From positions 1,116,001 to 1,180,000 of the forward strand of contig MU008171.1 of the NCBI GenBank assembly GCA_010909165.1: a DNA stretch of 64,000 nt. Direction: 5' to 3'. This DNA is from Anthoceros angustus. Lineage: Eukaryota; Plantae; Anthocerotophyta. The notes under the pieces are model-generated. The model was not told the origin of the DNA. It ran no database searches and was given only the letters and a program-made list of their open reading frames with translations. Below, piece by piece: positions 36,708-41,491 of the stretch. The translations under genes and the position numbers were made by a program. Every line of letters starts with the position of its first letter. Positions within the stretch are counted from its first letter, which is position 1.

Positions 36708-37809
36708 GGTGAGAAGACCGGTCTTCTCTTACTACCGTACCCCAAGGGGTGATTCGGTGTTAATTAATTAAAATTAATAAAAGTTGAAAATCCAGAAATT
36801 ATTATACTTAAAATGTTGAATAGGTAAAAATTTATGAGTTTATGATGCCGAAAATAAGAAAACTAGGGTTTGTGTGAAAAATTAGGGTCTATTTAGGGGA
36901 GGTCTATACATATCCATTAGTTTTATATATATACCTATGTATTTTAATAAATGTTGAAATTTGATAAAATTATTTTTTGTAAACATTAAAAATTTTGAAA
37001 AATATAAATATTTATGTTGAACCTTAATTTTTTTCCAAAATAATTATTTCGGCATTATCCTGTTGAACCACCCCTCGGTGTACGGTACATATTAATAATA
37101 TTTTTTAATTGTGTTATATTATATCATTTCTATGCTGTTAGAATTTTTATTTCGAGTTTTTTCTTCGAGCCGAGTTAGCTCGAACCGAGTTACATTATTC
37201 ATTTACATTATAAGAACATCTGAGTTTGTTAGAGCGGTTTGAGTGAAAAGATCCTAGTCTAATGTTATTGGCAGACAGACTTGAAGTTCTTGCTAGCTGA
37301 CCAACTGGCCGAGAGCCGGATGTGGAACCTGAAAGCACAGCCAGTTACCTCCTGAATACTTCAGAGCACCATAGCAAAGGTGAAAAATATTGGCTGAAAG
37401 CACAACCGATTTCCCCCCTCCTGTGTACATTTTATAACACCATTGTTCGACACGAAACGGTGAGACCTGGAGCAAACTGGAGCTTACTCACATCTCGCAA
37501 CTAAGCGGACCAGTATAATAGTGAGGTGCACACCACCTCAGACAAATCCAAATCCCAAGGCGTGTCAAGAGGTGAAAGAAGTTGCTACGCTTGGAGCGAT
37601 GCAGTCAACAGACCATCAAGCTACAATGCAACGGGAGATACACAAACTGGAAACAGGATCCCAGTACGCATAAACATTTCCTCTGTATTTCATACATTAT
37701 CATTACGATGACGTGCCATTGTCGATGGACACTGGAACAGCCCGAGGCACAACAAAACATGTCGGGCGCAGAATCGATGTCTCATGAAGTAAAGCCCGAT
37801 GCTGACCCT

Positions 37810-38770
37810 CTAAGCTCCTGGAGCAGCACGGCTGCCTGCAACCGCGCCGGGTCCTGGCAAAAGAGGCTCTCGTTGTGCAGCAGAGGCAGCCCGAGATCTG
37901 CGGCCTGATGAGGAAACCATGGTGTTAGTGCCTGATCAATCGATGAGAAGACTTTCGCAAGTGTCAGAGCTTTGCAATAGGAGCTACCAAAGCTCACCTA
38001 AGTAGGCCATGGACGCGATCAACAGCATGGATAGCCCGGACACAAGCAAGTCGGATCCGAACACAATTCCTATCAGCACGAGTCCGTACGTCGGCGCAAG
38101 AGCCAAAATGGTGAAAGCAAGGATGATGGACAGTAGCCCGCTGACCAAAACGGCCGGCCAGGAGCTCATTTGCCGCACTTGGCATGCCATGAGCAGCTTC
38201 AACACTCCCTGTGAGCACACGCACGCAAATTATTGCCGGTCTCACGTTGCGGTCTCATCGACAAACTGCTCACAAACAATCCAAGAGAAAGGAGATGTGA
38301 CAAACATGAGCTAGAAACCACCCGGCGAGAACGAAGAGGAGCATCGTCCCGCCTGCGATCGGCTGAAGGAGCATCCATATGCCGACACCGAGATGAAGAA
38401 ATCCGAGAAGCAAGAATGAAGTAGTTCCCGGCGCGCCGCAGACAAGCAGGAAGTGAAGAAGCGAAACCGCGCCACTGAGAACCAGCAGCCATGCTATGAG
38501 CTGCTCCACAGCCAAAGCAAAGACGATGGGGAACACGATGCCGACAACTCCGACGGCCACGAAAATGGCTCCGAAGATGGTGTAGTAGAGTGCCAGCCTC
38601 TCCAAGTGCTCCTCTTCCACATCCGAGGTGAGCGCTCTGATCGGGATATTGATGTAATACGTCTGCCTTTCCTCGGGAGGCACACCGGCGGGGACATCTG
38701 CTGCCTGCGTCGGGGACGCCGTGCCCGCCCCATAGCCGGACTGATAGTAGCCTTCCTCCTTGGCTGCCAT
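37810..38770 (-). CDS. HdeD/DUF308-family multi-pass membrane protein, 3 exons, 256 aa
   Basis: Exons 38770-38306, 38208-37998 and 37904-37810 (GT-AG, phases 0 and 1) give 771 nt in frame. The core IFGAIFVAVGVVGIVFPIVFALAVEQLIAWLLVLSGAV...LGVGIWMLLQPIAGG...LAGWFLAHGVLKLL...WPAVLVSGLLSIILA...IGIVFGSDLLVSGLSML follows the duplicated DUF308 helix-pair pattern of E. coli HdeD. Confidence 0.8.
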
Positions 38771-39650
38771 GATCGATGCTTAACCCTGCGCTCCTGCCGA
38801 TCCTCCTCAAATTGATATGCGCTGATACCTTTCCTCGCTTTGCCCCCGCCTTAGCAGCAGCAGCAGCAGCAGCGATTCAGCCAAAGAGTTTCAGGGACAA
38901 TGCTTTGAGGACGCACATGGCATCCACCAGGCTTGCGAGCCGAGGGTGAGAGTGTCGGCCTCCTGAAAGCACAACGTACACACGGGACATGTGGACAGCC
39001 ACGTGTCTGCTTGCCCGGACTGTTATGTGGTAGAGCCCTTCATGCACGCCGACTGTGGCCAGCTGTCGCCTCCTACCGGCTAGTTTTGTGCTACAGATGC
39101 CGAGTCAAACAATGTTCACTGGCTACAGACGGTCGCAGTTCTCGGTGCCCTAAATCATGTATTAACGTTCTCAAAGAGGAGCTGCGCACACCCCAGTCAC
39201 TATTCGTTACCACCTAGAGACTTGTCACCTGTTTGTCCCCCACACCGGAAGACTGGATCAGTAGTGTGAAAAAGTATCAATCAATTCACTCCACCTGCAT
39301 CTGCCGATCTAGACATACATACTGTATCAGCCGCCCCGGGGTTGAGATGCGGCGTAAAGATAAGGCCCTCAAAGTTGAAGTCTGAAAAAGATTTTCTGCT
39401 AACGAATTGTCGTCCAGCCCAAGCTCTATTGAGGTACTTACATCAAGTTGCCCCATAAGTGACACCTAGAAGTTGGAAGGACCTTGAGCAAGCATGCCAC
39501 GTTGCTGCATACAGGCCAGCATATTTCTGGGGCTTCTGCATGAGCTGTTGCTTCATCTGGGCCCTTCAGAGAACAGAAAGATTCTTCCCATGAGAGCCCA
39601 CAAAGGGACCTATTTCAGAGTGCTGAAATGAGACAAAACACTTCAAGTTC

Positions 39651-40979
39651 CTAAAGTTCAAAATCGTCATCTTTGAGAGCCGCCTCTCTTGTAGCTTCCT
39701 CCTCCTCTTCATCAAGCACAAAGTAGGGGTTGTGAGGAACCGGGCGGAACTTATAGCCCGTGAATAAGTAAAATGCAAGAGTGGCCAGCTCCTCCGCAAG
39801 GTCGCTTGTCCAGTGATAGTTGTAAGTCGTCACCGTCTTGAGCGCAAAAACTACAATGCGCGTGAAGTAGATGTAGCTCACCACAACAATATAATACTGC
39901 CGAAACAAGGTGAGCTTCACCACATTTCTGGCAGCCTTGCCGTCTGTCTGAGATGCTTCTCGAAGATGCTTTATCGACCAGACGATGGGGAGCAAGACTG
40001 CACAGCAGCAGATGAGGTCGAACAAGAGAAATACTTGCCTCCACGTCAACCAGCTGCGGTTTGAGGCAGGCCCCGTCTCTTCAATCACAATATTGGCTAT
40101 GTTTGCCATGACTTGTAGGGGAATAACCACCATGAGAACCTTCTTTTCCTTGTCCTGCAGAAACGGCTTCAGAAAGGACCAGCCTGTACCGATCAGCACA
40201 ATGACTATGAAGAGCATCACTCCCCGGAAGAAGCCGGATATGGTATAGGCAATATCCCATCCATGGGGTGTCCCAGTCTTCTCCACATAAGATTTGTCAG
40301 CCGCCTCGAACATCAAATTCAACACTTTTATGAAAACCAAGAGCCCCATGAGCAGATGGATGGAGTGGGCTGTTTCCTTCTGCTTCAAGCAGACGTACAC
40401 CCAGACGACGAACAGCACGACATAAATCGTGGCAAAGGAGAAATAAAGAGACGGCAGCTGCGTCTGACCTGCAGGGAGGTAGCTTTTCACTCCCTTCACC
40501 AAATTGTACATCTCAGTGGTGACCTCCATAGATACGTGGTTCTCCTGGCAGTTAGAAAACATAAGCGTATACTCATCTGCTTCGATGCTGGCATTATAGG
40601 AGTAAGGGAACTGGGCCACATCCTCCAGCCGGAACAAAAGCTTGACATGCTGGTTATCCAGCAGGCAGTCATTGGGATTCTGCTCCTCATCCACCAGAAC
40701 CTGCAGACGGGCCTCCCCAGTGATGAGGAAAAACCCCATGGAGTGGGCGGACGCAGCTGGAGCATTGCCCGCCGTCTGCACCTCTAGACTATTGAGAATG
40801 ACATCCACCCGACCCTGGGAGCCGAAGCCGAAGGTCTCGAACACTATAATGTTCCGGTTATCATCCTTGATACTGGAGTGCACGATGTCGGCATTGCAGA
40901 GCGGCAGGAGCGCAAGCAACAGGAAGAAAGCCAGTCCCAAGCAGCCCGGAAGCGCGGCTCTCCCACCCCCGCCCCCCAT
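39651..40979 (-). CDS. CAND6/CAND7-like lung seven-transmembrane receptor family protein (GPR107/GPR108 type), intronless
   Basis: A signal peptide (LAFFLLLALLPLCNA), a lumenal domain (FETFGFGSQGRVDV...EYTLMFSNC...MEVTTEMYN) and a 7TM part with IVLIGTGWSFLKPFLQDKEKKVLMVVIPLQV, KAARNVVKLTLFRQYY and TGYKFRPVPHNPYF. The start is taken at MGGGGG; the ORF track extends upstream to 41021. Confidence 0.93.
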   Translation of the reverse strand: MGGGGGRAALPGCLGLAFFLLLALLPLCNADIVHSSIKDDNRNIIVFETFGFGSQGRVDVILNSLEVQTAGNAPAASAHSMGFFLITGEARLQVLVDEEQNPNDCLLDNQHVKLLFRLEDVAQFPYSYNASIEADEYTLMFSNCQENHVSMEVTTEMYNLVKGVKSYLPAGQTQLPSLYFSFATIYVVLFVVWVYVCLKQKETAHSIHLLMGLLVFIKVLNLMFEAADKSYVEKTGTPHGWDIAYTISGFFRGVMLFIVIVLIGTGWSFLKPFLQDKEKKVLMVVIPLQVMANIANIVIEETGPASNRSWLTWRQVFLLFDLICCCAVLLPIVWSIKHLREASQTDGKAARNVVKLTLFRQYYIVVVSYIYFTRIVVFALKTVTTYNYHWTSDLAEELATLAFYLFTGYKFRPVPHNPYFVLDEEEEEATREAALKDDDFEL

Positions 40980-41491
40980 GGCTCGGGGGCTACCGATGCG
41001 CAAAACCTGAAGCATGCACAACGCCGAGAAACCGTGAGGAGGAGCTGGGAAACATCACATTGCAACCCTTCCACACCAAATGGCGACGTGTCTGGGCGGC
41101 ACATCAACTGACGAAGCAGGTCGGAACAAATCCGCATCTGCAGAGCCAAGCCAAGGAAGGCAAAAGCACAGCCGCATCAAAGCAGCAACCTAGTAACTTA
41201 CGCTTGCAGCAAACCGGCGAGGGGATCGACCTAGCCAGTGCCCTGCAGCGACAGGTCGGGAGACCCAAACCCTGTGGCTTCGCCGACACTTTCTCCGGTT
41301 GGAGTGGGAAAGCCAAGAAGCTTCTGCCCTGTGGGCTGCTTAGTTCACAACTTCAAAATCGTCTCATAGATTCTTGCGTCCAACTCTGGAAATTGCTCGC
41401 AGGTAGACTATTACCCGGCCTGCCTGCCTGCCGTAGGTAGTTCAGCTGCAGGCAATATACCTACCTGTATCTTTTTAGCGGAATACATAGA

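Follow-up and report, generated by a model that had tools for sequence, protein, structure and literature searches.

A counterpart of the Escherichia coli membrane protein HdeD was reportedly described by Peng, Oliver and Wood in 2005 (Plant Biol 7:315) in the moss Tortula (Syntrichia) ruralis, namely the rehydrin, or desiccation-stress transcript, TrDr3. Passages of papers citing that work (PMC4124477, PMC4445806, PMC5861431) refer to TrDr3 as an 'orthologue' of HdeD and as 'moss-retained', and the TrDr3 homologue of Bryum is high in dry tissue and in tissue rehydrated for 2 h, and lower by 24 h (PMC4445806). The bacterial protein (b3511) is an acid-resistance inner-membrane protein encoded in the acid fitness island; it is reported to contribute to acid resistance only when cell density is high, and its role is described as poorly understood, with a phenotype that depends on the method used (PMC5861431). 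The JGI annotation already names plant proteins of this type 'uncharacterized membrane protein HdeD (DUF308 family)', and it was already known that bryophytes have an HdeD-like gene and that higher plants lack one. The gene described here belongs to the hornwort Anthoceros angustus and was found in a 64,000-nt stretch of contig MU008171.1 (hereafter, the window; all coordinates are positions within it). It lies on the minus strand (38770..37810) and consists of three exons with 256 codons, as checked by translation and at the level of individual bases. It can with good confidence be regarded as the hornwort orthologue of a DUF308 (HdeD-like) membrane protein family that extends across the streptophytes and most probably includes the moss TrDr3.

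The window protein resembles E. coli HdeD in its six-helix DUF308 core, in the Gly/Pro framework, and in the polar positions of transmembrane helices 4 and 6 (TM4 and TM6). However, HdeD has neither the N-terminal extension nor the tail motif of the plant proteins, and the TM4 position is occupied by His in plants. The genomic context also differs, being hdeAB-hdeD-gadE in E. coli and a CAND6/7-type neighbour in A. angustus. As to TrDr3, the moss transcript described as a counterpart of HdeD, mosses carry members of the same clade to which the window gene belongs as the hornwort orthologue. The closest non-streptophyte relatives found are proteobacterial DUF308 or 'HdeD family' proteins of 190-200 aa (for example, Parvibaculum sp. 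HEX7774930.1, and proteins from metagenome-assembled genomes of Steroidobacteraceae and Xanthobacteraceae), which are 34-40% identical to the protein of the alga Chlorokybus. Their genes are intronless and encode short termini with no PLL tail, and no tree makes them the supported sister of the streptophyte proteins.

Family membership and distribution

The exons of the window gene were scanned one by one against the Pfam profile of DUF308 (PF03729, cutoff 25 bits) and the NCBIfam equivalog model of HdeD (NF007577/PRK10209, cutoff 189 bits), with the orthologue from Nothoceros (P0001), a transcript-derived sequence, serving as the full-length proxy. DUF308 was matched, as the sequence-only reading of this locus had expected: a match below the cutoff was found in each of the two large exons, and the match exceeds the cutoff in full-length relatives (38.8 bits for P0001, with 15 of 16 such relatives matching). 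On NF007577, exon 1 aligns to profile positions 10-116 and exon 2 to positions 119-185 of 190, in colinear order, and P0001 covers positions 11-183. The scores obtained with this model, 46.4 bits for P0001, 36.7 for the Chlorokybus protein, 17.6 for exon 1 and 28.6 for exon 2, are all below 189 bits. In BLASTP comparisons P0001 is 24% identical to HdeD of E. coli K-12 over 185 aa (E 3e-6), and 35% identical to a Parvibaculum 'HdeD family' protein over 174 aa (E 4e-29).

Judged by these comparisons, the protein is a clear member of the DUF308 superfamily that is colinear with HdeD, and the hydrophobic core of DUF308/HdeD type recognised in the sequence-only reading is real. Its classification as HdeD proper was rejected because the equivalog cutoff was not reached (46 vs 189 bits). 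The 'acid-resistance-type' label proposed in that reading is overstated, given the failure to reach the equivalog cutoff and the poorly understood role of HdeD in E. coli itself (PMC5861431).

A word-based search with exon 1 retrieved 27 proteins, those named being from Ceratodon, Physcomitrium, Selaginella, Riccia and Diphasiastrum. The protein most closely related to the window protein comes from the hornwort Nothoceros aenigmaticus (77% identity over exon 1), and the moss members (Physcomitrium and Ceratodon) are about 60% identical to exon 1. An exhaustive profile search of 1.84 billion representatives (E <= 1e-3) yielded 2417 matches, about 20 of which score 130-290 bits; those at or below approximately 94 bits form a continuum of proteins of about 190 aa. 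The distribution described here is drawn from the best 150 of these 2417 matches, about 40 of them taxon-labelled, including all matches longer than 255 aa. Among land plants, the labels comprise Nothoceros, Diphasiastrum, Selaginella, Riccia (two species) and Ceratopteris, and among algae Chara braunii, Spirogloea, Mesotaenium, Closterium (several paralogues), Netrium, Klebsormidium (two species) and Chlorokybus. Orthologues are present, overall, in hornworts, liverworts, mosses, lycophytes, a fern, and streptophyte algae down to Chlorokybus.

The labelled non-streptophyte matches are all bacterial or archaeal (Parvibaculum, Mesorhizobium, Halorientalis, and 'HdeD' entries from IMG metagenomes), and one unlabelled neighbour protein is encoded in a dense bacterial gene context. 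No eukaryote outside the streptophytes was found among the approximately 40 labelled proteins of the best 150 of 2417 matches, every match longer than 255 aa included, and no seed plant was found among the named matches despite the heavy representation of angiosperm genomes in the databases. The family is likely to be absent from eukaryotes outside Streptophyta. A word search with divergent algal members, limited to 8000 candidates, returned only metagenomic bacterial HdeD and no further eukaryotes. Scanning of GTDB with the plant motifs CGAPGTT and FLLLGxLHL gave 85 pattern matches, none of which was confirmed as a relative, while a scan with a tight bacterial alignment gave 556 proteobacterial relatives, which the tree does not place as sister of the plant clade.

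Several members of the family have unusual forms. In Spirogloea muscicola SM000152S01570 (P0030), the DUF308 part occupies residues 998-1204 of a 1208-aa model, which is probably a fusion of adjacent gene models rather than a true multidomain protein. Divergent long-branch paralogues occur in Closterium spp. (P0055, P0171/P0196 and P0037) and in Riccia fluitans (P0043 vs P0010), and one Closterium copy carries a Pro/Gln-rich N-terminal extension of about 200 residues.

Phylogeny and origin of the family

Three trees were constructed with bacterial homologues included. In a quick tree of 144 rows, which retained all streptophyte rows, 26 streptophyte rows fall on one side of a single branch with a value of 86 in the Shimodaira-Hasegawa-like approximate likelihood ratio test (SH-aLRT). 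In a second quick tree of 164 rows, with long-branch rows removed and named Proteobacteria added, the SH-aLRT value of the streptophyte clade is 98. In a careful tree of 79 rows, calculated with LG+C20+F+G4 under the posterior mean site frequency (PMSF) approach, the streptophytes form one clade with 100/95 support that is recovered in 100% of 200 bootstrap trees, with a bootstrap that had not fully settled, and the nearest outgroups are prokaryotic. Within this clade Chlorokybus branches first and Klebsormidium next, followed by a group of Chara, Zygnematophyceae and land plants (99/95), in which Zygnematophyceae and land plants are united (100/91); the support of the Zygnematophyceae is 96/71 and that of the land plants 97/86. 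The window protein and that of Nothoceros are joined by very short branches (99/94). Since the branching of the clade follows the species tree, the phylogeny indicates that the family predates the divergence of crown streptophytes and has been inherited vertically since then, with no member seen in seed plants.

The sequence-only reading had proposed an old bacterial transfer into this plant lineage. In that form the proposal is not supported, as orthologues extend from Chlorokybus to a fern and branch in the order of the species tree. Broad vertical orthology across eukaryotes and green plants had been regarded there as an observation that would contradict it; within Streptophyta the orthologues are indeed broadly distributed and vertically inherited, but the labelled matches included no member from chlorophytes or from other eukaryotes. 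It is plausible that the gene was acquired from bacteria no later than the streptophyte stem, most simply in one ancient event, and the balance of probability is slightly in favour of this.

The same tree can also be read as ancient vertical descent, in which the DUF308 gene already existed in an older ancestor, eukaryotic or archaeplastid, and later disappeared from chlorophytes, from seed plants and from other groups, no transfer having taken place. This scenario, which is possible although unlikely, agrees with a clade that reaches the deepest streptophyte branches, follows the species tree, and lies outside any defined bacterial group in all three trees. Loss does happen in this family, since no seed-plant member appears among the named matches. 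However, ancient descent has to be reconciled with labelled matches that include no eukaryote beyond the streptophytes, even among all matches longer than 255 aa, and with next-best matches that are prokaryotic by name or by context.

Nesting of the streptophyte clade in a defined bacterial donor group was not found in the three trees; no donor can be named, and cyanobacteria are not prominent. The soil Proteobacteria with the highest scores against the algal profile (Steroidobacteraceae, Xanthobacteraceae and Methylocapsa) are not the nearest in the 164-row tree. Endosymbiotic transfer from the cyanobacterial ancestor of plastids, for which there is nothing specific beyond a prokaryotic family in a photosynthetic host, is very improbable. 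The closest named prokaryotes by score are Proteobacteria (Parvibaculum, Mesorhizobium, Steroidobacteraceae, Xanthobacteraceae and Methylocapsa) and a haloarchaeon rather than cyanobacteria, no chlorophyte member was seen among the labelled matches, and the N-terminus is acidic, unlike a transit peptide. Targeting of the protein to plastids was rejected on account of the same acidic N-terminus.

The intron positions provide a further view of the history of the gene. The Physcomitrium gene has introns at both positions found in the window and a third one near the N-terminus, and the Closterium gene shares both window positions. Because they are common to Physcomitrium and Closterium, both introns were already in place in the ancestor of Zygnematophyceae and land plants. 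The introns of Klebsormidium are at positions different from those of the window. In Chara braunii (BFEA01000101.1, 3001-3756 of the locus examined) the gene appears to be intronless, being a single open reading frame (ORF) of 251 codons in which TM6 is normal and the tail reads RQPFL; the 357-aa model deposited as GBG68480.1 (P0033), which leaves this frame after TM6, looks mis-annotated. The positions thus are not shared between Klebsormidium, the intronless Chara and the group of Zygnematophyceae and land plants, a pattern that fits an intronless ancestor, as predicted by a bacterial origin, and speaks against ancient descent from a eukaryotic gene. The indication is weak, as intron turnover could equally have produced it.

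In Klebsormidium nitens (DF237567.1, 4285-4485 of the locus examined), the first intron contains a degenerate copy of the start of the next exon, with 45% identity at the protein level, that looks like a decayed exon duplication.

Gene structure, expression and terminal additions

The features of the gene are listed in Table 1. The clean three-exon gene for a 256-aa protein described in the sequence-only reading is confirmed by translation, by transcript splicing and by colinearity with P0001, to which the exon translations correspond at residues 1-159 (77% identity), 160-229 (80% identity) and 231-257, without gaps at either junction. The G+C content of the exons is 0.56-0.66 vs 0.46-0.49 for the introns (0.49 for intron 1).

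Table 1. Coordinates of the A. angustus DUF308 gene and its parts within the 64,000-nt window
Feature	Positions	Strand	Content or boundary	Basis
5' untranslated region, minimum extent	38771..39100	-		unbroken cover by contigs of three runs
Start codon ATG	38770..38768	-		base-by-base check
Exon 1, coding part, 155 codons	38770..38306	-	acidic N-terminal extension, TM1-TM3 and most of TM4; ends on conserved TM4 His codon 38308..38306	translation
TYYINIPIRAL motif, conserved	38662..38630	-	exon 1	
EHLERL motif, conserved	38611..38594	-	exon 1	
CGAPGTT loop	38440..38420	-	exon 1	
Intron 1, 97 nt, phase 0, GTTTGT..CACAG	38305..38209	-	between His and Gly inside TM4	
Exon 2, 70 codons and first base of Gly codon	38208..37998	-	end of TM4 with Lys 38199..38197, TM5 from WPAV, TM6 with Asp 38052..38050	translation
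Intron 2, 93 nt, phase 1, GTGAGC..ATCAG	37997..37905	-	just past TM6	
Exon 3, coding part	37904..37810	-	basic disordered tail, predicted to be cytosolic	translation
REPLL tail motif	37872..37858	-	exon 3	
Stop codon TAG	37812..37810	-		base-by-base check
3' untranslated region, minimum extent	37617..37809	-		contig pieces; same-species contig runs on below 37500

Transcript contigs from four public runs, representing four organisms and four studies, were compared with the window over positions 37500-39100. The contigs of one run, from the same species, show 0 mismatches, and identity is about 93-95% in the other three. The contigs of all four runs lack exactly 93 nt and 97 nt at the predicted introns, the ends of which read CT..AC on the plus strand, equivalent to GT..AG on the coding strand. 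The DUF308 gene is transcribed, and both of its introns are spliced out, in A. angustus and in three close relatives. The differences from congeners that were listed include 20 in coding sequence, 18 of them synonymous and 15 at third codon positions (P = 1.7e-4); this pattern of substitutions points to a reading frame under purifying selection.

Upstream, and in the same orientation, the neighbouring gene is an ORF of 456 codons without introns (41021..39651) that combines a CAND6/7 N-terminal domain (PF21904) with a GOST seven-transmembrane domain (PF06814). This is an ordinary plant gene for a membrane protein, and the context of the locus is nuclear and eukaryotic. Although the family is mainly prokaryotic, a recent bacterial transfer specific to this lineage, or bacterial contamination of the assembly, has a negligible probability. 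It is contradicted by two spliceosomal introns, which the transcripts of four species lack, by a plant-type gene next to the locus and by the vertical position in the tree, and the closest relative is a hornwort protein at 77% identity, while the nearest bacterial proteins are about 35% identical. Recent transfer and contamination were both discarded as refuted by the introns, the neighbouring gene and the tree.

The same-species transcript contig is 3577 nt long and continues for about 200 nt past position 37500 and about 1960 nt past 39100, and thus runs from approximately 37300 to 41060. This extent would span both the CAND6/7-like gene and the DUF308 gene, with only two introns removed, which could result from read-through transcription, overlapping untranslated regions, or an assembly merge of tandem genes. 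A (GCA)7 trinucleotide microsatellite on the plus strand (38853..38873) is located within the 5' untranslated region of the DUF308 gene.

The plant proteins differ from their prokaryotic relatives by additions at both ends. The first hydrophobic segment starts at median residue 56 in streptophytes vs 22 in prokaryote-type proteins, and the C-terminus lies a median of 45 residues vs 27 beyond the TM6 motif. The N-terminal extension, considered a eukaryote-like addition in the sequence-only reading, is indeed one, with about 55 residues that have no counterpart in prokaryotes. Its TYYINIPIRxL...EHLERL motif is conserved from Chara upward, and is not found in Chlorokybus and Klebsormidium. At the other end, a P-[LIFM]-[LIFM] motif, usually in the form [RKH][EQ]PLL, is found near the C-terminus (last 40 residues) in 21 of 27 streptophyte proteins and in none of 162 prokaryote-type proteins; it is also present in the window protein and in the Chara ORF, and the conserved core of the streptophyte tail is [RKH][EQ]P[LF][LI]. 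The motif has been kept from Chlorokybus to the window gene, a degree of conservation worth noting in a disordered tail. Seven Lys and Arg residues lie in the N-terminus, the TM4-5 loop and the tail taken together, and the loops of the opposite side contain none. By the positive-inside rule, the predicted topology is N-in/C-in, which would place both additions in the cytosol. The tail motif might serve as a short linear signal for endomembrane sorting or for binding of a partner.

Predicted structure, possible role and significance

An AlphaFold2 model of P0001, based on the family alignment, contains six helices (residues 57-88, 92-114, 121-139, 145-169, 176-200 and 203-239). The predicted local distance difference test (pLDDT) value is about 90 in the core, and both tails are disordered. 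The six helices are made up of repeated two-helix units, and the window exons align with the core without gaps; a weak internal repeat signal was detected between exon 2 and residues 83-149. Polar and Gly residues were compared in 19 streptophyte and 145 prokaryote-type rows. Streptophytes and prokaryotes have in common glycines in all six helices, a Pro where TM1 ends and a Trp where TM5 begins. The polar position of TM4 is His in plants and Glu, Asp or Gln in prokaryotes, with Lys or Arg four residues further, and that of TM6 is Asp in plants and Asn or Asp in prokaryotes. All three intrahelical polar positions are retained by the window protein. The helix count, the topology and the conservation are shown directly or well supported.

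The best natural matches to the model in the PDB are the succinate-acetate channel SatP/YaaH and the urea channel UreI, with Foldseek TM-scores of up to 0.54 normalised by target and E values of 0.1 or worse; nothing in the PDB was matched by Foldseek at E <= 1e-3. A designed six-helix barrel gives a higher score (Z 14.7) than the natural matches. Searches of the Atlas by features and by shape retrieved only bacterial DUF308 proteins or unrelated transporters. The SatP/YaaH channels and UreI of H. pylori share with the model six helices in three two-helix hairpins and an up-down arrangement. No sequence similarity was found; the resemblance is one of architecture only, and it is evidence neither of membership in these families nor of channel function.

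An activity and a localisation can be inferred from these features only tentatively. In the proposed mechanism the helices would form an up-down six-helix barrel, in which the His and Lys of TM4 and the Asp of TM6 would constitute a titratable site. The protein would then work in the manner of a small channel or transporter that responds to pH or ions; it would operate in the plasma membrane or in endomembranes during desiccation, rehydration or acid stress, with its location or its partners set by the tail motif. This model of an N-in/C-in barrel with a titratable site, a channel- or transporter-like activity and tail-dependent location or partners is speculative, although possible.

A number of observations weigh against the interpretation as a whole. 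Scanned separately, exon 1 (22.4 bits) and exon 2 (17.6 bits) each remain below the 25-bit cutoff of DUF308. The inclusion of TrDr3 in the family, most probable as it is, is deduced from the titles of papers and from the presence of the family in mosses rather than from the TrDr3 sequence. The apparent restriction of the family to Streptophyta was observed in the best 150 of the 2417 matches, about 40 of which were labelled. The sister of the streptophyte clade is a single unlabelled bacterial row that changes from tree to tree (P0100, then P0085). The QREPLL motif of the sequence-only reading, there called dileucine-like, is present and is conserved in streptophytes, but in the window tail, A-Q-R-E-P-L-L, Q is found at -4 and E at -2, and the canonical [DE]XXXL[LI] is not matched. 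The Z values of SatP and UreI, 9.7 and 9.3 (VIA; 163 and 152 residues), are below the helical-bundle noise of about 13, and a sequence profile search of the PDB gave chance matches only, with no related solved structure. Finally, the function of E. coli HdeD is itself unsettled.

In the literature on TrDr3 and HdeD, no statement was found of a streptophyte-wide distribution with a vertical tree, of shared introns, or of the tail motif, the 2005 TrDr3 paper being outside this search. Likewise, no link of DUF308 or HdeD to horizontal gene transfer in plants was found in the papers examined, which did not include the survey by Ma et al. 2022; the family goes unmentioned in the supplements of the A. 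angustus genome, a 2025 survey of plant domains and a 2025 review of horizontal gene transfer. The most complete scenario assumes that one bacterial gene entered the lineage at the base of Streptophyta or earlier, gained introns, the N-terminal extension and the [RKH][EQ]PLL tail, took on a pH- or ion-responsive channel-like role at endomembranes in drying and rewetting, and was dropped as seed plants arose. Taken in all its parts, this scenario is doubtful; if true, it would extend by a membrane component the early episode of horizontal transfer into streptophytes that is discussed in relation to plant terrestrialisation.

At present, the family is a candidate for, and not yet a case of, ancient transfer from bacteria to streptophytes, and the example of this gene illustrates that a prokaryotic Pfam family and the presence of introns are by themselves insufficient to call a lineage-specific transfer. 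What had been suspected to be a domesticated bacterial gene has become a defined and testable family of small membrane proteins extending from Chlorokybus to ferns. The tail motif and the His, Lys and Asp residues of the helices are direct targets for mutagenesis, and the family is a useful marker of gene loss at the origin of seed plants. In mosses it is tied to the response to desiccation and rehydration.

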